From Scyliorhinus canicula (lineage: Eukaryota), in assembly GCF_902713615.1 (NCBI RefSeq), contig NW_024055654.1:4021185-4085184 (forward strand): a DNA stretch of 64,000 nt, given 5' to 3'. Each line of letters opens with the position of its first letter. Within the stretch, counting starts at the first letter, position 1. The position numbers were made by a program, and so were the translations under genes. The notes beneath the pieces are model-generated. The model had not been told where the DNA came from. It did no database searches and saw nothing but the letters and a program-made list of their open reading frames with translations. Positions 1-12,223 of this stretch are shown here, piece by piece.

Positions 1-1
1 A

Positions 2-2097
2 GCAGAGCTAGCAGCCATAGCGTACATAGTGGACCACCCCGATTCTTTCCCCAGCCCAGCAGACATATATTCAGACAGCTTATATGTCTGTAACAGTGTA
101 ACAGATTTTCTGCCCCTGTGGAGGACACGAGGTTTGTCTCCGCAGACGAAAACCCCTTCCATCAGCCCCCTTACCTCCAGCATATCCTAGATAAAGCGAA
201 GGACAGGACCTTCGCATAATAAAAGTAGAAGCCACCTAGGGTCTCACCCCCTGGGAAGGTAAAGGCCGACGCGTTGGCTAAGGGCAGGTTCCAGGAGAGG
301 ACACTTATGGACCCCCCCAGCTAGCGCACCAGCTAGCGCCCCTGTGAGCGCAGTCCAAGTCTCACAGACTGATATTAAAGATCTCGTGGCAGCACAGAAA
401 CAGGACGGAGACCTCAGGGAGGTTTTCAAGGGAAACTTTGTGCCTGCTTACGAGCACTTTAAACACGCACTGACCACACATGAGGGTGTGATCATTAAGG
501 ACCAACTTTATGTGGTCCCACAGCAGGACAGGAATCAGATGATTTGCCTGTTCCATGACGGACACGGGCATCAGGGAATTGATGCAACAACGAGGCACCT
601 CAGGCAACTCTGTTGGTGGCCTAATCTCAGGAATGATGTAACGCACTACATAGAGAATTGCCTGATTTGTGCTCAGAATAACCCGGAGAGGTATTCTAAG
701 AAGCACAACTTCGGCATACTCGCCCAGTTAACGGCCCTGGACAAACCTCCAGATCGACTTTATAGGTCCATTGCCCCCTTGTCGGAATGGCTATAAATAC
801 GTTCTGGTGGTGATAGATACCTTTACCAAGTGGGTAGAGGCATTTCCCTCACGAACAAATACAGCAAGACAGCTGCAAAGATCCTGACCCACCACATCTT
901 CACGAGATGGGGTTTACCCCGAAGTATCGATTCGGACCAGGGATCTCACTTTACAGGACGGGTCATGAGGAACGTCCTGACAATATTCGGAATCAACAGA
1001 ACTTCCACATTGCGTATCATCCACAGTCCAGCGGGATTGTGGAGCGCATGAATCGGACCCTAAAAACTACCCTTCAGGAAAATGGTCAAGAGAACATTCC
1101 ACATGGGATTCAGTGCTCCCCATTTGCACTTATGTTCATAAGGAACACTGTCTCCACATCGACAGGATACACACCACACACACTCATGACCGGACGCCCT
1201 ATGAAAGGTACAGAATTCCTTTTAGGACTGGACATGACAAGCCCCGAATTGACGGCCCTCACACATGAAAAGGCAGTTAAAGATCTAGTTGAGACTGTGA
1301 GGTCTGCACAGCTCGCAGCCGCAGTCCAGCTAGGGAAACGCCGACAGCAACGTACTGCCTGTTTCAATAAGACCGTACACACCACAGAATTCCAGGTTGG
1401 GCAACAGGTAATGTTATCTGTTTATAACCCCAGCAGTTTTTTGGCTCCAAAATATTCCGGTCCCTACTCAATTTCGGACAAAATTAGCCCTCCGTTTACA
1501 GGATAAAGTATCCTAATGGGAAGACCGCGTGGTTCCATATAAACCAGTAAAGGCATATGGAACACAGGCCAACCATGCTCACCATGTCCTGCTGGATGCA
1601 GCAGAACACTTCACCCCGCCCACCAGAGACACTTTTCCACCATCCCCCTCACAGACCAGTTCATCAACGGACTCGCCCACGACTCCGCCACAGACCACTA
1701 CAGACCACGCCCCGACACGCCCACAAGCTGCCACAGCAGAGACAGCAGGACATGACACTGACTCTGAAGACAGCGACACCACACAGCCATACAGCCCACA
1801 CTGCACCAACTACGACCCCGACTCCAGTGACCCCATGGAAGTCACCTACCTCAAATATCCAGAACCACCACCCGACCCCGACTACCCCGACAACACACTC
1901 GACGCTACACAATGGCACAGGGACAATTCCTACAGACTTGTCCGCAATGACGAGAGTGACCCCCGGTCACACAATCCAAAATAGCATGCCTGATCCACAC
2001 AAGGGTGTGGGATCCGGGAGAGCAGGACGACACGGTGTCTGACTCCCGACACGGCAACCCCTTTGTGACCCTGTTCACAGAGGCAGAATCAAAGTGA
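2..2097 (+). pseudogene. pol: pol C-terminal half: retroviral-type RNase H, integrase (HHCC zinc finger, DDE core, GPY/F) and a P/T/D-rich extension; frameshifted as assembled
   Basis: Frame 2 from base 2 reads AELAAIAYIVDHPDSFPSPADIYSDSLYVCNSVTDFLPLWRTRG (RNase H E and D motifs). ORF 344-796 has HDGHGH...CLIC. Stitched frames give WTNLQIDFIGPL, VVIDTFTKWVEAFP, SIDSDQGSHFTG, YHPQSSGIVERMNRTLK and KYSGPYSI. ORF 1529-1984 is the frameshifted continuation, with a probable stop TGA at 2095-2097. Confidence 0.9.
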
Positions 2098-3024
2098 GGT
2101 GTCCAGATGATGTAAGATAGGAATCGTTTGAGGGAAACGATGTCCTTTCTGATGGAACCTGCACGTATGTTTGTCTTCGTTTATGTTTGTTGTTTTCAGG
2201 AATGTAAATGTTTCAGCTGGAGGATGGACATCTTCTTTTCAGCTGAAAAGATTGTGACCACCTCACATACACGTTAGCTTGTCCTGCCGAACTTGAGAAC
2301 TTCGGTTTGATTGGAGATCTTTTCCAAAGTTGTAAGGCCACACGCCAAATAGCTTGTCCGCAGATATCTCTGGAACTTCAGTGATGTCCTCAGTTGGAGC
2401 ATCTGGCTCCCTTGGTTTTTTAGGTGCCCCTCTATTCGGCGAAATAGAGGCTGCAAGTCATGGTAAACACATTCGTACCCGTTTTTTTCCAGGTTACTCA
2501 GGCAGTGGACAAACGGCACTGAGGACCCGCCCTGTCTGAGAACCAACCCTTGGTCAGCCAAGCTCGGGTATGGCACAGCACGCCCTACCCGGGGATCCCA
2601 TCCAACTCATACCCGTCGCGGCCCATACGCAACTCATTCGGATGTTTGTTTCCAAGTTTGTTTTCATTTTACGTTAGGTACGCCCTTCGGCCACCATCCC
2701 ACATGCTATTTACATCGGGAACATTCGGATGGTAAATCAGCAAAGCCTGCGAGACGGCTCGCAGAAGGAAGGATTGTTAGGTGTATGCTGGTCTTTAAAT
2801 TCGCTTTTTGAAAAAAAAATGAGGGAGTCACAGGGTGTGACTTAGCCAGTCATTTTAAAGGGTCAATTGGGATTTGAAAGACAGATGCACTAACAAGTAA
2901 GGTCTTAAACTGTGTATTGACAGATACTGTGCTTGATCCCAAAGGTTTCAAAGGACGAGACAGAGGTCGAAGCCAGGATTGTCAATACCGGAGGAAGAAG
3001 GAAGAGAAAGAAGAAGAACAGCAA

Positions 3025-3378
3025 ATGATGGAAGCCCACTTATTACTGTTTAATGTCATATGTATATGTGTGGAAACAAGACACGTTTCCCCCACAACCC
3101 CCACCGTAAATGTTAGTACAACAAACCCCCAGTGCTCAGCTCTGATCAGCGAGGTTCAGACCTGGTGTACTAAATTCATGACGTGGTACTCCATGTCCTA
3201 CATAATCGAATCACTGTTGGTGATCGCGATCCTCATCGTCCTAGTGCAGACCCTCAGGTTGAGGAAATGGAAGAGGAGAGCCTCTCGTTCCAGCACCTCA
3301 CCCATCTATAGAGTGCAATCCCCCATCTTCGGATTCCACCAAACCCCTCAACCCCTCACTGATTACAACACTCTGTAA
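3025..3378 (+). CDS. 117-aa small single-pass membrane protein in the env position (FAST-fusogen-like architecture)
   Basis: ATG at 3025 is in frame with track ORF 2917-3378. MMEAHLLLFNVICICVET is signal-like; then an S/T/P-rich segment with an NVS sequon, C-X10-C, hydrophobic YSMSYIIESLLVIAILIVLVQTL and polybasic RLRKWKRR. The frame is uninterrupted, unlike pol. Confidence 0.7.
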   Translation: MMEAHLLLFNVICICVETRHVSPTTPTVNVSTTNPQCSALISEVQTWCTKFMTWYSMSYIIESLLVIAILIVLVQTLRLRKWKRRASRSSTSPIYRVQSPIFGFHQTPQPLTDYNTL

Positions 3379-3697
3379 ATAAAATTCAGCCATGTATTAT
3401 ATTGTTCCATACTCGACTGCCGAGTTGGGAAGTGTGATGTTGTGGTGTGAATGGTTAAGGTTTAGAGTGATTAAATGTTTAAGTTAAGGTTAAGGTTAAT
3501 AGTGATAGGTAGAGGTTCCCAGTTGTAGTAATGCATGTCCTTTTGACATAGGGCCAAGTAGAAATGTTAGTTAAAAATTTTTTTCTCTTCTTCCCATAGT
3601 TTAGAACAGAGTAGAACAGGAACTGGCAAGAGGTCAGAACACAAGGAAGGCAAAGTACATAGGTGATCCTTCACAATAGTATGATTGTGAGGATCAC

Positions 3698-3707
3698 AAG
3701 GAGGGAA
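3698..3707 (+). promoter_or_regulatory. Polypurine tract of the LTR element
   Basis: AAGGAGGGAA lies immediately before the TGT start of the LTR and is preceded by a stem-loop at 3663-3697. Confidence 0.8.
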
Positions 3708-4656
3708 TGTAGCCATGCTGGCCACGCAAAATGGACACTGAGCCAAACTAAAATAGAAGACTGCTGGGAAACAGACAGTTTAGCCAGAACAGCAGTCTGC
3801 AAAGAGCAGTTTGCATTCTGCAGCAGCAGAAACCAGTTTGGGCTCAGGTGAAAAGACCTTAGCTAGGTGCAAATGGCAAAACACTTTGCATGCTAATGAG
3901 GCCATCAGACTTGAACACCCACACAATAGATACATTTGGTTCTGAATGGACACATTCTAATCAAGACCCAGACATCGAGGCACCAGAAACCTCCAAACAA
4001 AAGGACATAAGAAACGCCCCCTCCATCACGGAGACCCCCTCGCATTGGGGAATTAATCCAGTATCGATAAGAAATTGATCCAATAGGTAGAGCCCGCCCG
4101 AGAAGAGGGAAGGACAATGGAACCCCTATAAAAGATAGGGACCTCGTGTTGTCCGGTCTGTTAAACCCGTGCTCCGGCTCTGACTGACATCTTGCATCCT
4201 GACTCCAGCCGTTGAGCACCAGCCGCCGAAACCGTAAGTTCAACGCTCGCTACGCGATCCAAGCCCACTAGACTCCCAAGTACCAGAACGCTTGCTGAAG
4301 GCTGCAGTGCCAGACCAGGACGAAGGCCTCGTTCTCTGACCTTGCCTGTTCCTGTTAGATAAGTATTCTGTTTGCTTAAGTTTAGTTATAGCTTAGTCTC
4401 TTAGTGTGTGCATGAGTATTTATTATAACTGTATAATAAATATTGATCGTTTGAACTTTACTAATCGGTGTATCGTCTTTATTACTTTGAACTTGACCTT
4501 GGAATACTTGTGACGTTGCCTATACGGCAACTGGCGACTCCAGAGCTAAATAATTACATAGAACAGAGCCTAGCAGTGTTAAGCACACGTCGAACTCGGA
4601 GGCGTGTTAATACACTCCAATAAACGCGTTTTACGCCCATAGTAAAACGTGCAACA
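3708..4656 (+). repeat. 3' LTR (~949 bp)
   Basis: TG...CA termini with an imperfect inverted repeat (TGTAGC/GCAACA), TATAAAA at 4127-4133, AATAAA at 4435 and 4619. The 5' LTR is not in the window, so the right boundary is inferred from where the flanking repeat resumes. Confidence 0.75.
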
Positions 4657-5085
4657 TGCCATTGAATGTCAAGGGGCGGTGGTTAGATCCGTTCTTACTG
4701 GAGATGGGCATTGCCTTCAATTGGGTGACTTGACTGTTACTTACCACTTGTCAGCCAGAACCTGATGTAGTCTCCATGTTGCTTTATTTACACATAGATT
4801 TATTCAGTGACTGCACAGTTGAAAATTGTGCTGAACTTGGTGCAATCATCTGAGAACAATCCCAGTTCAGACATTATGATGAAAAGGTCATTGATGAATA
4901 AGCTGAAGATGGTTTGTCCGAGGACACTGCCCTGAAGAAGTCTCGCAGTGATGTCCTGGAATTGAGATGATTAGCCTCCAGCAATGGAATCCATCTACCT
5001 TGGTGCTAGGTATGACTCCAACCAGCGGAGATTGTTCTCCTGATTCCCATCCATTCATTAATAGAACCATCCTTGGATTAGAAAC
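4657..5085 (-). mobile_element. Old non-LTR retrotransposon remnant (target of the LTR insertion)
   Basis: Similar to 60540-60800 in the same orientation. Confidence 0.5.
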
Positions 5086-5140
5086 AGGCATTCTTTGGTT
5101 GGGCTCCTTAAGGTCACACGTTTAAATGATGCCGTGATTT

Positions 5141-5450
5141 GGCGGCACTGTAGCACAGTGGTTAGCACTGTCGCTTCACAGCACCAGGGATCCGGATTCC
5201 ATTCCCACTTGGGTCATTGCCTGTGTGGAGTCTGCAGGTTCTCCCCGTGTCTACGTGGGTTTCCTCCAGGTGTTCCGGATTCCTCCCTCAAGTCCTGAAA
5301 AACGTCCTGTTAGGTGGTTTGGATATTCTGAATTATTCCTCTGTGTATCCGAACAGGCGCCAGAGTGTGGCGTGTAGGGGATTTTCACAGGACCTTCATT
5401 GAAGTGTTAATGTGAGCCCACTTGTGACAATAGTAAAGATTATTATGTTT
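5141..5450 (+). mobile_element. tRNA-derived V-SINE (HE1-like) with a third tail type
   Basis: GGCGGCAC...GTGGTTAGCAC head, V-domain GGTCATTGCCTGTGTGGAGTCTGCAGGTTCTCCCCGTG, tail ACAGGCGCC...CACTTGTGACAAT...ATTATT. Confidence 0.8.
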
Positions 5451-5486
5451 ATTATTGATGTTAGATTCAGTCGCTCTCATCTGTGT

Positions 5487-7340
5487 TTCTGACAATGTGT
5501 GTGTGTCTGCGTGTGCGTGTGTGTGAGAGGGAGAGTGTGGGTATGTGTCTGAGAGCGTGTGTCTGTGCATATGTATGTGTCTGCATTCGTGCGAGAGATG
5601 GATGAAGAGAGTGGGAGAGAGAGTATGCATGTGGGTGTGTGTGTGAGAGAGAGTATCTCTGTGTGTCAAAGAATATCTGTGTGTGAGAGCGTCATTGTGT
5701 GTATTTGTGCGAGCGAGAGGATGTGTGTGTGTGAGGGAGCAAAATAGTGTCCACAGGAGAGAGACTGTATGCGCAAAACTGTATGAGAGAGCATGTATGC
5801 ACCAAAGCATGCGAGTGAGACAGCATATGTGTGAGAGAGCATGTGTGCCAGACATCATGTTTGTGAGAGCATGTGGGTGAGAGAGTGTACGTGTGAGAGA
5901 ACGTGAGCACGAGACAGTATGTGTGAAAGAGAACATGTGTGCAAGAGAGCACACGTGCAAGAGAGCATGAGTATGAGAAAGCATGTGTGAGAGAGCATGT
6001 GTGTGAGAGAGCATGATTGTGAGAGCACGAGACACCATGTGTACAAGAGAACGTGTGTGAGAGCATGTGTGCGAGAGAGCATGTGTGTGAGAGAGCGTGT
6101 GTGCAAGCGAGAATGAGAGAGCTTGAGTGTGAGTGAGTGTGCAAGAGAGAATGAGAGAGCGTGTGTGTGAGAGAGCGTGTGTTGGTGAGAGCATGAGTGT
6201 GTGAGAGTGAGTGTACGAGAGAGCGTGTGAGTGAGAGGGCATGTGTGTGGGGGAGCGTGTGTGCAAGATAGCGTGAGTACGAGTGATATGTGTGTGAGAG
6301 AGCGTGTGTGTGAGAAAGCAGGTGTGGGAGAGTACATGTGTGTGAGAGAGCATGTATGCAACAGAGCAAGTGTGTGTGAAAGCATGTGCTCTAGAGAGCA
6401 TGTGCATCAGCGAACATGAGTGTAAGCGAGTGAGAGATTGCGTGCGGAGAGAGTGAGTATCAGAGCGCATGTGCATAAGAGAGTATGTATGAAAGAGAGG
6501 ATATATGTGTGTGAGAGAGCAGGAGTACAAGAGAAATTAAATGAAAATCGTTTATTGTCACGAGTAGACTTCAATGAAGTTACTGTGAAAAGCCCGTAGT
6601 AGCCACATTCCGGCGCCTGTCCGAGAATCGAACCGTGCTGCTGGCCTGCTTTAAAAGCCAGCGATTTAGCCTGGTGAGCTAAACCAGTCAGCATGTGTGT
6701 GAGAGAGGCCGTGTGTGTGAGAGAGCGTGTGTGTGAGAGGGTGTGTGTGTGAGAGCATGTGTGTGAGAGAGCATGAGAGAACGTGCGAGCGAGAGACGAT
6801 GCATGTCAGAGAGAGTGTGAGAGAGAGCGTATGCATAAGAGAGTGTGTGTGTGAGAGAGCGGATGTGTGAGAGATGTCTGTGACAGAGCATGTGTGTGAA
6901 CGAGTGTGTGCGCAAGAGATAACGTGTGCGAGAGTGCATGTGTGTGAGTGTGTGTCTGCGAATGATTGTGTATGTGAGTGAGATTGGTAAAACTTGTAAG
7001 AGAGAGTGTGTGAGAGAGTGTGAGAGGGAGATTGCCTGTGAAAGAGAGAGAGGAATAATGTGCCTGTGCCTGTGAGAGAGCGAGTGACAGTCTGTTGGTG
7101 TGTGAGGGAGATTTGGAGCGAGATAAAGTTGGAGACAGTGAGTATGTAAGAAACTGAGTGTGTGAGGCAGTGCGTGTGTGTGCCCGAGTGTGTGTGTGCG
7201 AGAGACTGTGTGTTTTTGAAGAGCTATTGTGTATGTGAGAGTGTCTGTGAGAGAGTGTCTGTGTGTTTGAGGAATAGTCTGGGTTTGTGGGAGAGAGGGA
7301 GTGTGTGAGGGAGAAACACTGTGCGCATGAGAGAGTATTT
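5487..7340. repeat. Degenerate (GT)n/(GA)n compound array with a recurrent GAGAGCATGTGTGT unit
   Basis: Read directly; it accounts for the His/Thr/Ser/Leu-rich spurious ORFs at 5385-7357 and is interrupted by a SINE at 6536-6686. Confidence 0.95.
6536..6686 (-). mobile_element. Short tRNA-derived SINE (CTGGTTTAGCTCAC... family)
   Basis: Reverse complement matches the copies at 21121, 26843, 52890 and 59400; tail TGACAATAAACGATTTTCATTT. Confidence 0.8.
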
Positions 7341-9254
7341 AGTCTTTCAAATTTCACTCTGAAACACAGGGGAACGAATCATTCAAACTGCTCGATTCTA
7401 ATTGATAAATGGTCAACTTACGACAATAACAATTCAATAACCTTTTTGAAATGAAACTGATATTAATTTCAAAACTCCCTTCGCCTTTCAGCTATTTCTC
7501 CTGTCTGTCTGAACTGGGCACAATGTATTATCACGGAGAATGATCACATTAAATATAACAGATTGAGGGGAGTTTAATGTCCGTGGCAAAGATCCAGTGT
7601 TTGCTAAGAAATAAACAAACCAGGAAACATTCACATTGGAAACTGATGACCTGATTTGATCCAATTTTCTAATTAAATATAATCAACAAAACAATCGAGG
7701 CGGGTCGACTCTTCAACCTGAGTAAATAAATGTATTGTTTTGTAAATTATTTTCAGTACAATTAAACATTCTCTAATAGCTTTGATATCGCACGCCAGTG
7801 TACTACTCAATTGTAGGGTTAATTTATGTTGAATTAGTTAGTACTAATGTCACATTGCCAATTGTCAATTAGTTGACCTGTCAGCTGATTTGTACTCTAT
7901 AATATAAATAATAAAACATGGTTCTCTGTAATTCAAAACCTGCTCCTGTCTGAAATTTGATAAATAGTTTGGATTTAATTAAATATTAAACTTCAAATTA
8001 TCGGATGGAATAATTCAGACATGTGCAATATCTCATCAGTTTGTTAAAGCGGTACTCCCGAATTGATAAACTATTGTAACTCGAAACTATATCTCTAACA
8101 ATAAAGTCCTTGGTAGTTTGTGACCAATAAAAGTGTTTCGAGATTTAATCATTCAGCAATTCGATTAACTTTATTCTTGAAAATATTGCTTAAAGAAAGG
8201 AGATCCAAATTAATCAGTGCAACACTTAATGAAAACAACTCAGTCAGATCCTCTACAGCACTGAAACATAATCAGAAAATGATGTAGAAATGTTCTTGTT
8301 CAATTTATGATTTAATAAGAAATAAGCTTGAGGCTCAGATATAATCTATTCTTCTATTGTATAACTTGTTTTATTTCTATAATGTTATATTATGCACAGC
8401 ACAGCTCTGCGAGACAGGATGTTATTATTTTTTGCAAAGCTAATATTCTCCTTTTGTAATTAAATTAATATCTTTGAATTTCAAGCTTTTACTGTGTCTC
8501 CAGCAATGAGCAGTATGAACATTCCTACAATTTAGATAAAATCATAAGAACAATTCCTTCACTGTCAGCGACTTCCACCTCTGACAAAACTCTTTATGAT
8601 TATATCAGAGACAACTACAAATGACGCTGAAGAGATAATATACGAGCTGCTGCACATAAGTAATATAATAACCGGATACATAAATTGCCAAACTGCAATA
8701 TAAAACTCCTACTTAAGTAACTGCAAACGTAATCAGAGAAATAAAAAAATAATTCAAATATATATTGTGCAACTGAACAGTGCTGTAGAATCAGTATATT
8801 ATTATTAAAACAGTTTCATAAATAATCAGAAAATATTTCCAGTTTAGAAACTTTTCTGGTCATGCTGATGGAGTGCAGAGCAGAGCAGAATTGTGAAAGG
8901 CGATTGATGATTAATGATATTAATATGAAAATATATTTGGATAATGTGGTTATAACACAGCATTATAATTGTTTAAGTTATATTAATTTTACTCACTAAT
9001 TTGAAAACGTTTTAATTAAACAGTTTCAGATTGCAGTAACAAATTGCATTCTTAATGACGCCATGGTTTAGTTTAATCAGTAATCATCAGGTAAAATTTA
9101 AATATGTCTATCAAATCTTTAATTGCTTTCTTTATTTTCGAAACCTGCCGCGTTTACTCCCTACAATTGTGTTTCAAGGAGATTCAAACGCGCAAATCTT
9201 TCGACATTAAACCAGAAAACGTGTAACTGCTCAATGTCACCCAGTTTGAACAAT

Positions 9255-10345
9255 GCAGAAACAACGGAGAAACAGAAATCGCTTCACAAATTGTACTTAT
9301 TCAAAGTCACCCAGACACACTATCTCCTCAGCAGGAAAACACCAAAACTCAACGTAAGGACTGAACTCGTTTCATTGAGAAACAGCTAAATTCTACATTC
9401 AACAGTGTGAAACGTAACATTTCAAAAACATCTGAATATCGAATCCAGCGAACCAGTTCGCCGTCAAATGTATGAATTATCAAACTAAATAGAAATACAG
9501 AATAACAGTAATATCGTTGTCAGGATGTGGGGTATGTCCAAAATATTTTAAAAACTTTACCACATTCTATACAGGTTGGACCGTATTTCAAACGCATTTA
9601 AACAGTTGGAAGGATTGATAAAAGCTGCATCCATCAATCCCACCAAGATGGAACATTGCAGAAAAGCCAGGATGTCATTGCAGTAACAAATTATGTTCGG
9701 AAAGAGCATTATAAACTGTGGCTTAATTTAATCTGCAATCATCACTTTTAAAAAACACTATAAAATCATGACTGTTTTCCACCCACAGTCGTGTACCAAG
9801 CAGTTTCAAATACGTTTCTTGTTTTCATTCAATTACAAAAATGGGACCGCTCAGTATCATCGAGTTTAAAGAATATAGAAACGCCAGAACCGTTTCACAA
9901 ATTCTACTCATTCAAAATCAACCAGCCACAAACTCTTCAGCAGAAATACAGCAAATTACATCACCGAGGGGCTGAAATCGGTCTCATGGAGAACCAGCTC
10001 GATTCTACAAACACTTTCAACAGAATCAAACAGCATTTCAAGAAAATTCTACCCACCAAATCCGCCTTTCAGCAAGTGAATGAACAATTAAAACACAGAA
10101 ATATGGAAGAATATCATCAGCATTGTCAATAAGCGGGAAGTGTTCAATAAATTGACACAGATACTTCAGCATATTTTGTGAGTATTGGGTTAGATTTCTA
10201 ACACTTGTGCAGGAGATGGTAAAACCTGCTCAGATGTCGCCGAGATTAAACATTGCAGAAATACCAAACTGTTTAACAGGCGTTAGGTATTTAAAGTACC
10301 CAGCCACACAGTATCCTCAGCAAATAAACACTAAATCATAACAAC
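9255..10345. repeat. Three degenerate copies of a ~170-bp unit just downstream of JH
   Basis: ~9255-9430 aligns by eye with ~9870-10050 (TTCACAAATT.TACT.ATTCAAA.TCA.CCAG.CACA...TCAGCAG); a partial third copy lies at ~10250-10345. Confidence 0.65.
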
Positions 10346-10552
10346 CCGGCACTGAATCCCTCAGCAGAACCTTTTGTCAAGAGGCAGAATAATTCCTTTT
10401 TCAGCAGAATCACATGAAACATTACAACAAAATCTCAATACAGAATCCAGCAAACCCGCAATTCAGTGAACGGATGCATACTTAAAATAGAAAAAACTAA
10501 ATAAAACAAAGACTGAAGTAAAACAGTTCATAAATAATGGAAAGGTTCTTAC

Positions 10553-10609
10553 CTGCAGTCACCGTCACCATGGTGCCTTGTCCCCAGTAGCCCAAGATGT
10601 ACCAGGTAT
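10553..10609 (-). CDS. IGHJ: Joined D2-JH exon of an IgH cluster (TWYILGYWGQGTMVTVTA)
   Basis: Minus strand ATACCTGGTACATCTTGGGCTACTGGGGACAAGGCACCATGGTGACGGTGACTGCAG|GTAAG: WGxG J motif, phase-1 donor, open in the J frame, preceded directly by a 12-RSS. Confidence 0.92.
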
Positions 10610-10637
10610 CACAGTGAGACACAGCGTGTCAAATACT
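10610..10637 (-). promoter_or_regulatory. 12-bp-spacer RSS 5' of the DJ segment
   Basis: On +: heptamer CACAGTG 10610-10616, spacer AGACACAGCGTG (12 nt), nonamer TCAAATACT 10629-10637. Confidence 0.9.
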
Positions 10638-10932
10638 GCGGCAGACTGTTAACTGTAAAACACAGATTTAATTTCAGTGCGCTCTCAAAAAACTATGTTT
10701 CTTCCAAGAGCGAATGTGTGAGTTATTTCAGCTTGTCCTGATCACTACATTAATAAAGAGGATCGGAACACTTTTAGACGCTCTGGGCAGGTTTAGCCTG
10801 TTGGTCAACAGAGATAAAGTGGAACATTTTTATACCTTTTTCCAAAATAACATTTTGTTTTATTTAAACCTCATTAACATTGACGATCCTGCTGGGGTTC
10901 TGATCACCAATTTGAACAAGCTCTTTCTCTGA

Positions 10933-11013
10933 GGTTTTTGTATGAGGATGTCTCTGTGCACAGCACTGTGACCCACTGCTGTAGTCACAGTGACAGACAC
11001 CCGCACACAAACT
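10933..11013 (-). other. IGHD: IgH D1 segment (ACTACAGCAGTGGGT, 10971-10985) with 5' 12-RSS and 3' 22-RSS
   Basis: On +: GGTTTTTGT (10933-41), 22 nt, CACTGTG (10964-70), 15-nt D, CACAGTG (10986-92), 12 nt, ACACAAACT (11005-13). This matches the shark 12-D1-22/23 configuration; D1 is open in all three frames. Confidence 0.95.
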
Positions 11014-11382
11014 GCACTCACTCTCTGTTCAGTTCTGCCGCTCAATATTCACTTCAAATAGACGATTACCCCTAATCTAATTTACAATTTAGGCAACAGT
11101 TTATCAAACTCAATGTACATGGATTTTCCCAAGTATCACAATAATAAAGCGAGGATTATATCCACGTCTGTAATAGCTGAAAGTGTTAACAGTAAATGTA
11201 AACAGGCAAAGGCTCATCCTATTAGATCGATTGGTTTGTTCGGTTTTACTGTTTAATTTTATCTGTGTGAGTTATGTAAGAAGCAGCTTGTGTTTAGATT
11301 CTGATCACTGGCATCAATATTACATTTGGATCAAGTGCTGACCTTCAGGTTAAGCTGCAAGTTGCTGAATTCCCTCTCGAGC

Positions 11383-11421
11383 TGTTCTTGTGCGGGTCCA
11401 GCCCTGGTTCCTCTCGCTGTG
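11383..11421 (-). promoter_or_regulatory. 23-bp-spacer RSS 3' of VH
   Basis: Minus strand CACAGCG (11421-11415), 23-nt spacer, ACAAGAACA (11391-11383). Confidence 0.92.
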
Positions 11422-11726
11422 GTTTCTTGCACAGTAATAGATGGCGGTGTCTTCGGTCTTCAGGTTCGTCATGGCCAAAGAGAAGCTGTTGGTTGAAGTG
11501 TCTTTGGACGCAGTGAATCGATCTTTAATTGCTGCGGCGTAGTTGTTGTTGGATGAACTATAGTAATATACCAACCACTCCAGCCCCTGCCCGGGAACTT
11601 GCCGGATCCAGAACATATTGTAGCTGCTAAGATCGAAGCCGCTGGTTTTACAGGTCAGTGTCAGGGAGCCTCCGGGACGCCCGGTCTCTGCCTCCGGCTG
11701 AGTCAACACAACATCCGACTGGACAC
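11422..11726 (-). CDS. IGHV: IgM-type VH exon (leader part 2 plus V domain), intact
   Basis: Acceptor TTTTTACAG| then (R)[100 protein letters not shown]. Conserved Cys, Trp and YYC are present; the FR1/FR2 signature is of shark IgM VH type. Confidence 0.97.
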
Positions 11727-11854
11727 CTGTAAAAATATATCAAAAAGCCCGAGGATTAATGCTGGTGAAATGATTGGTGACTCTGGAACATTCCAGAGAG
11801 AGACTAACACTGAGACAGTAACAGTGAGAGACTTGGACAATAAAAACTACTCAC

Positions 11855-11912
11855 GGGATAAGTAAGTCAGCAACAAACTGAGAGAAATGGCCCACCTCAT
11901 CCTTCTGGTCAT
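11855..11912 (-). CDS. IGHV: VH leader exon (MTRR-MRWAISLSLLLTYLS; ATG at 11912 or 11900)
   Basis: Hydrophobic signal ending TTA TCC C|GTGAGT; a 128-bp phase-1 intron (11727-11854) joins it in frame to the V exon, giving ...YLSRVQS. Confidence 0.93.
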
Positions 11913-11990
11913 TTGGGGAAATGGTTGTGTCAGGAACTCAGTGAACAAACCAGCTCCCGGACTGTTGGATTCGGGTCCCAGTGATCGGCA

Positions 11991-12223
11991 TTTAAATACC
12001 CGGCAGAAGGGGGCGGCTTTCCAGGCGCCGCCTGTTGATTCCCTGGTGGAGGCGGCGCCTGGATCCACGTCCCGCCTTCCACACCCCCAACAGAATGGAC
12101 ACAGAGATTTACTATAGAATATTATTAAAAGTGGATATTTATGTGTATCTGGATAGTGGTTTGTCTGACTAGATTCTTAGTGATGTCCTAATTGGTTCGA
12201 TTGGCGAAATTACATTTGCGCAT
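11991..12223 (-). promoter_or_regulatory. Putative VH promoter
   Basis: TATTTAAA at 11998-11991 (~80 nt upstream of ATG), two sense CCAAT boxes (12195-12191 and 12204-12200) and AGTGATGTCC at 12179-12188 resembling the TCR-Vbeta/CRE decamer. No canonical ATGCAAAT octamer nearby. Function is inferred. Confidence 0.55.

Follow-up and report, generated by a model that had tools for sequence, protein, structure and literature searches.

Germline-joined IgH clusters have been known from sharks since the 1980s. These joined antibody genes serve as the standard case for a V(D)J recombinase that can act in germ cells and reshape antigen-receptor loci over evolution. Type III IgNAR carries its D1 and D2 segments fused in the germline, and the TCR beta and TCR delta loci share an RSS layout of V-23, 12-D-23 and 12-J.

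The germline forms named in reviews are VD-J, VD-DJ and VDJ (PMC5192425, PMC4279169). The order in which shark IgH segments join is not fixed, and V-D-DJ is among the intermediates that arise somatically (Malecek 2008, PMC2435157). Joining by RAG in germ cells has been argued for the shark Ig genes (Lee 2000, PMC2193156). As a germline form in sharks, V-D-DJ is absent from the reviews examined, and a literature search, with the older primary papers outside its scope, returned the somatic intermediate only. A V-D-DJ germline configuration has rarely, if ever, been described, and an earlier report is possible. A first-pass annotation of the DNA treated here had remarked that joins of D and J alone appear to be less commonly reported than VD-type joins, which fits the three forms named in the reviews.

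Here, we describe an IgM-type cluster of the catshark Scyliorhinus canicula in which D2 and J are probably fused in the inherited DNA, giving the configuration V-D1-D2J.

Layout of the catshark cluster

The cluster lies on the minus strand of the window, by which is meant the whole 64-kb stretch of DNA that was analysed. Read 5′ to 3′, it consists of a VH segment with a 23-RSS, a D1 segment with 12- and 22-RSSs, a single 12-RSS and a 57-nt coding segment, as established by direct reading and an RSS scan. A TATA-like box (TATTTAAAT, 11990–11998) was identified upstream of the leader; no perfect octamer was found within 600 bp upstream. Leader exon 1 (MTRR/MRWAISLSLLLTYLS, 11855–11912) lies within an ORF at 11847–12068, starts with an ATG at either 11912 or 11900 and ends at a gtgagt donor followed by an intron. 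VH exon 2 (11422–11726), comprising the end of the leader and the V domain, was placed by translation, Pfam and protein matches. Its reading frame is open, and the translation contains the conserved Trp and both conserved Cys residues. Pfam assigns the V domain to V-set (E = 2.4e-19); it is matched best by unnamed proteins of Scyliorhinus torazame (80–85% identity) and Chiloscyllium punctatum (81%), and its identity to the Ig heavy-chain V region HV01 of Heterodontus francisci is 76%.

The V 23-RSS (11383–11421), found both by reading and by the scan, is made up of the heptamer CACAGCG (11421–11415), a 23-nt spacer and the nonamer ACAAGAACA. The heptamer thus differs from CACAGTG, which counts against the reading of this locus as V-D1-D2J. 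D1 is a 15-nt coding segment (ACTACAGCAGTGGGT, 10971–10985) that aligns to the D1 of two bamboo-shark clusters, L001 and L005. It is preceded by a 12-RSS (10986–11013) with the nonamer AGTTTGTGT, a 12-nt spacer and the heptamer CACTGTG, again from both reading and scan, and is followed by an RSS (10933–10970) in which a perfect CACAGTG heptamer and a perfect nonamer, ACAAAAACC, are separated by a 22-nt spacer. Three traits expected of a cartilaginous-fish IgM heavy-chain cluster are seen here: the leader of the VH is split and its RSS is of the 23 type, D1 sits a few hundred bp downstream of V between a 12- and a 22-RSS, and the JH has a WGQG motif and a splice donor. Judged by its sequence, the locus comprises the V, D and J segments of an IgM-type heavy-chain cluster of the catshark.

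Within 10001–12200, the RSS scan returned the four RSSs in the order expected, without any other convincing candidate; neither a D2 3′ RSS nor a J 23-RSS was found anywhere in this interval. The first-pass annotation had given the same layout, V-23RSS, 12-D1-22 and one 12-RSS (10610–10637) abutting the last segment, and had reported that no D2 3′ RSS or J 23-RSS is present. Direct reading and the scan bear out both the coordinates and the description, and the spacings that it had put at ~400 bp from V to D1 and ~360 bp from D1 to the segment were measured as 436 bp and 361 bp, respectively. A stricter scan of the whole window found strong RSSs in this cluster only, copies of a dispersed repeat aside, and J-motif, YYC-motif and RSS scans revealed no further Ig or TCR segments in the 64 kb. 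A YYC-motif match at 42966 was considered as another V and rejected, as it is not a V. The dispersed repeat occurs at 6587, 21246, 52946 and 59449 and carries GGCGCCGGAATGTGGCGACTAGGGGCTTTT, then CACAGTA/G, 22 nt and ACAATAAGC. This arrangement resembles a 22/23-RSS, and false RSS matches are to be expected in scans of the catshark genome.

No constant-region exon was found in the 10.5 kb downstream of J within the window, nor any Ig-like ORF on the minus strand of 1–10552. A tblastn search with the ORFs of bamboo-shark DNA downstream of J matched only repeats and transposon pieces. In the bamboo shark, the first 5 kb after J likewise contain no C exon, and the catshark C exons probably lie beyond the start of the window. 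Several repeated elements occupy the downstream region. Retroelement pol fragments are found at 344–2042 on the plus strand, opposite to the cluster and presumably within the J-C intron, and include an ORF at 344–796 that encodes an H2C2 integrase zinc-binding domain (Pfam E = 1e-19), with further integrase-like ORFs after it. At 5640–7263, 3–5 kb downstream of J, are ~1.6 kb of degenerate 14–16-nt TG/AG-rich tandem repeats (e.g., TGTGTGAGAGAGCATG, ~39 copies), in which long ORFs with many H, T, L and S residues arise spuriously. Just downstream of J, the AT-rich stretch at 8800–10450 contains several similar ~550-bp units with recurring aacattgcagaaa, cccagccacac and ctcagcag; these units are missing from the output of Tandem Repeats Finder, in which periods were limited to ≤500.

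The fused D2-J segment and its borders

The 12-RSS that follows D1 (10610–10637, minus strand) has the nonamer AGTATTTGA at 10637–10629, a 12-nt spacer at 10628–10617 and the heptamer CACTGTG at 10616–10610. It is directly abutted by the 57-nt coding segment (10609–10553), which runs without any RSS into YWGQGTMVTVTA and a gtaaga splice donor and translates as (AT)TWYILGYWGQGTMVTVTA.

IgH clusters of other sharks were obtained through V-protein matches, five from the bamboo shark Chiloscyllium punctatum (L001–L005) and one from the whale shark Rhincodon typus (L006). Two of these six outgroup clusters are V-D-D-J (one of them degenerate), three are VDD-J and one is VDJ; none is V-D-DJ. L005 is a complete, unrearranged cluster with a V 23-RSS, a D1 with 12/22 RSSs, a D2 and a 48-nt J with a 23-RSS. 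Its D2, ATATAACTGGGGTGA, is flanked by a 5′ 12-RSS (AGTATTTGA, a spacer of 12 and CACAGTG) and by a 3′ 12-RSS of the CACTGCA type. L005 was chosen over L001 as the reference for D2 because the D2 3′ RSS of L001 seems to be deleted. In L001 (7268–7330; C. punctatum BEZZ01001580.1), the D2 5′ 12-RSS is kept, and from ~11 nt onward the sequence corresponds to the mid-part of the spacer that separates D2 and J in other clusters (GTGTTACTCTGTGAAG...). L001, otherwise unrearranged, seems to have lost the 3′ end of D2 and its RSS by deletion and is possibly a crippled cluster. Three of the five clusters sampled in the bamboo shark, L002, L003 and L004, are germline-joined as VDD-J: their V-D-D is fused, a CACTGCA-type 12-RSS comes next, and the J has a 23-RSS. 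The whale-shark locus L006 (Rhincodon typus NC_063338.1) is a fully joined VDJ.

In blastn, the window at 11500–10607 is collinear with L001 6405–7298 from the end of V as far as the third base of D2, taking in D1, the spacers on either side of it (V-D1 and D1-D2) and the D2 5′ RSS. The next blastn block pairs 10598–10542 of the window with the J of L001 at 7508–7563. Against L005, positions 10675–10607 match the D2 5′ RSS (4140–4206) with 83% identity, and 10589–10542 match J (4624–4671) with 90%. The placement is taken from local blastn, as a global MAFFT alignment with L005 put J wrongly on the D2 ‘ACTGGGG’. The nonamer before the fused segment is the same as the D2 nonamer of both L001 and L005, and this identity, together with the homology of the flank to bamboo-shark D2, identifies the 12-RSS before the segment as a D2 5′ RSS. 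The J part of the fused segment has 88–90% identity to the 48-nt J segments of the bamboo shark. Missing from the window is exactly the stretch with the 3′ end of D2 and the adjoining 12-RSS, the spacer between D2 and J, and the 23-RSS of J, amounting to ~400 bp in comparison with L005 and 209 bp in comparison with L001.

The D2 and J borders in the catshark itself come from Logan contigs aligned to 10100–12100 at 90% likeness, drawn from catshark DNA sampled in 2019 (X1) and 2024 (X5), from DNA of a related species (X11) and from RNA (X15). These contigs are short, and the 90% likeness brought in those of many close paralogues, whose loose ends mark the germline borders of D2 and J. X1 contigs that fit J diverge after 10600 and continue as CACAGTGT (plus strand), that is, with a J heptamer immediately next to the position corresponding to 10600. 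A further X1 contig matches the window down to 10602; beyond this point its sequence, in sense, is GG CACAGCA / GTTACTGTCAAT (12 nt) / ACAAAAAGC. This end is a D2 3′ 12-RSS of the type found in the bamboo-shark VDD-J clusters L002–L004. From the loose ends at 10602 and 10600 it follows that the germline D2 of the family is ATACCTGGGG and that the germline J starts with ACATCTTGGGCTAC...

By these borders, the 57-nt segment falls into three parts. The D2-derived part, ATACCTGG (10602–10609), ends at the loose end at 10602 and lacks 2 nt of the germline D2 of the paralogues. It is followed by a single T at 10601, which lies between the two borders, and by a 48-nt J-derived part (10553–10600; ACATCTTGGGCTACTGGGG...; YILGYWGQGTMVTVTA) that appears to be untrimmed and extends to the gtaaga donor. 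The junction therefore reads ATACCTGG-T-ACATC, with one non-templated nucleotide. For this T, the candidate origins are P addition at the J end (T/A or GT/AC), N addition and an ancestral difference. It is established V(D)J biochemistry that P nucleotides go with untrimmed ends, and here a palindrome is formed by the T with the first base of J, or by GT with its first two, as would result from P addition to an untrimmed end opened from a hairpin; as P-nucleotide evidence the T is weak, as a chance match is expected 1 time in 4 and an N nucleotide is equally possible. As far as the letters tell, a D2 minus 2 nt, a T and an untrimmed J constitute a typical RAG coding joint. As expected of a partially germline-joined cluster, two segments are contiguous with no RSS between them, unjoined relatives exist among the same-species paralogues and in the bamboo shark (L005), and the junction lies at the heptamer borders and has coding-joint features.

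The first-pass annotation had proposed that RAG joined D2 to J while V and D1 stayed recombinable, and this core reading, with a coding joint of RAG type, is now supported both by the bamboo-shark homology and by the same-species borders. It had further suggested an alignment to unrearranged paralogues, and the same-species contigs have indeed delimited D2 (ATACCTGGGG), the T and the start of J at 10600. Its proposal of trimming or N-addition at a TWYILG junction holds in part: D2 is trimmed by 2 nt and one T is non-templated, but YILG belongs to the germline J. Other J-bearing contigs and transcripts share ...TTGGGCTACTGG, and the junction shrinks to the W/Y boundary.

Probable origin and predicted consequences of the join

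In the most likely course of events, RAG would have cleaved the 12-RSS on the 3′ side of D2 and the 23-RSS of J in a germ-line cell, removing ~400 bp as gauged by the homologous bamboo-shark interval. The coding ends would then have been joined as in a lymphocyte, with the loss of 2–3 nt from D2 and the addition of 1–2 palindromic (P) nt to an untrimmed J. The presence of the join in the assembly consensus suggests that it arose in a germ cell and was inherited. The recombination units that remain in the sequence are V-23RSS, 12RSS-D1-22RSS and 12RSS-DJ. Under the 12/23 rule, lymphocytes could still make V-D1 and D1-DJ joins from these units, or a single direct V-DJ join. By either route there would be one junction fewer, and the C-terminal part of CDR3 would be fixed as (T)WYILGYW; the predicted C-terminal CDR3 signature of this DJ is ...CCTGGTACATCTTGGGCTAC.

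The V and J of this family are strongly covered, at high depth, in the RNA run (X15). In RNA contigs the splice falls exactly at 10553, and the sequence beyond it reads, in sense, ATPSPPFLYG, a Cμ1-like start; paralogous J segments may be the source of these contigs. An RNA contig with a joint of 10602 to 11428 (GTACATC...) was considered as proof of DJ use and rejected: it may come from this DJ, but equally from a paralogous J to which GT was added as N or P nucleotides. A search of RNA runs with the DJ segment, with 5 sampled words only, matched a conserved J word in many species.

Alternatively, the reference might contain a mis-assembly or a D2-J join made somatically in a lymphocyte or thymocyte, with the inherited locus being an ordinary V-D1-D2-J, but this is improbable. 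The junction does look exactly like a somatic coding joint, V-D-DJ is a real intermediate in shark lymphoid tissue and thymus (PMC2435157), and among the contigs listed, none demonstrably bridges this cluster's own junction in a second individual. However, V-D-DJ is among the rarer intermediates (PMC2435157), and a single somatic joint makes up a tiny share of cells and should not win the assembly consensus. The flanks of the cluster assemble cleanly, and the sole assembly gap, a run of N at 45996–46171, is ~35 kb away.

Two sets of contigs bear on what the sampled catsharks have in common. A 299-nt contig spanning 10631–10929 with zero differences is found in two DNA samples from different studies (2019 and 2024), so the D1-D2 spacer of this cluster is not private to one data set. 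Germline-joined paralogues are also common to individuals of the catshark, which speaks against a somatic origin. One fully joined VDJ paralogue (joint 10595 to 11428) has a 30-nt junction, TCTACAGCGGTGGGATTGGATGGCAATACG (sense), that is identical in both DNA samples and reaches a depth of 38 in RNA; it is an expressed germline-joined IgM V exon elsewhere in the genome. Since its junction is identical across both DNA samples, germline-joined IgH genes exist in the catshark and are common to individuals, in this case at a different locus.

More improbable still is that the D2-J interval was deleted independently of RAG, through replication slippage, microhomology-mediated end joining or unequal crossing-over. 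Losses of a few hundred bp are common, and the bamboo-shark cluster L001 is itself an apparent example involving the D2 3′ RSS. However, both break points in the catshark cluster lie at coding/heptamer borders, one exactly at the border of J and the other 2–3 nt inside D2, and the chance that a random deletion within ~400 bp on each side would do this is estimated at ~1e-4 or less. Moreover, D2 and J share no homology to drive an unequal exchange.

Least credible, and already largely refuted, is a primary single-D cluster without any D2-J join, in which an ordinary J has always carried a 12-RSS, an alternative raised in the first-pass annotation that falls on the D2 5′ RSS homology and the paralogue borders: V23 / 12-D-22 / 12-J would obey the 12/23 rule by itself and has the layout of the TCR beta and delta loci, but the segment is 57 nt long against 48 nt for J in the bamboo-shark clusters and catshark paralogues, its first 8 nt are the start of the paralogues' D2, its RSS and ~70 bp of 5′ flank are homologous to the bamboo-shark D2 5′ RSS with an identical nonamer, and its J homology begins exactly where the J heptamer of the paralogues abuts.

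If D2 and J were indeed joined by RAG in the germ line, the clean junction, with its untrimmed J and putative P nucleotide, would show directly, in the sequence, that hairpin-mediated joining by RAG takes place at a heavy-chain locus in germ cells. Such joining has been noted as hard to dissect for H chains (Lee 2000, PMC2193156). It is conceivable, if rather doubtful, that V-D-DJ clusters form a recurrent, maintained subclass of catshark IgM loci, or that the join is still polymorphic, with joined and unjoined alleles. A polymorphic join would point to recent RAG activity in the germ line. A maintained subclass would represent single-D, TCR-beta-like mini-loci with a hard-wired C-terminal CDR3 and one-step V-DJ joins.

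Comparison with known joined clusters

The partially joined IgM clusters of other elasmobranchs (VD-J and VD-DJ; horn shark, skates and sandbar shark) are among the closest known counterparts of the catshark cluster. These are likewise cluster-type IgH mini-loci that have lost an RSS pair and the intervening DNA, and they have coding-joint-like junctions and remaining live RSSs; VD-DJ holds the same kind of D2-J join. They differ in that the catshark cluster is joined at D2-J only, with V and D1 both free.

The clusters L002–L004 of C. punctatum and L006 of R. typus are like the catshark cluster in their V family (66–81% protein identity), in their J and RSS types and in being joined in the germline. 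However, they are joined from the V side, as V-D1-D2 or throughout, and keep either the J 23-RSS or no RSS, whereas in the catshark cluster the joining is on the J side and three units with flanking RSSs remain.

The somatic V-D-DJ intermediate of nurse-shark IgH (Malecek et al. 2008, PMC2435157) is identical in configuration and in junction type and demonstrates that a D2-J join can come first and stand alone. The nurse-shark form is transient and occurs in single lymphocytes or thymocytes, whereas the catshark form is present in a genome assembly and is presumably inherited.

Two further systems share single features with the cluster. Type III IgNAR is likewise joined only in part in the germline, with a portion of its CDR3 hard-wired and the other joins still to be made, but differs in isotype and in the segments involved. 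The TCR beta and delta loci have the same RSS layout as the joined catshark cluster, but the V, the J (WGQG) and the splice pattern of the latter are those of an Ig heavy chain.

Beside VD-J, VD-DJ and VDJ, a cluster joined at D2-J only would supply the missing J-side single-join form, which fits the unordered joining of segments in sharks, and its clean junction would be a readable footprint of the joining mechanism. Functionally, with one junction fewer and part of CDR3 fixed, an antibody V exon would be possible by a single V-DJ step. The overall picture is unchanged, and the catshark cluster would represent a new configuration of a well-known phenomenon.
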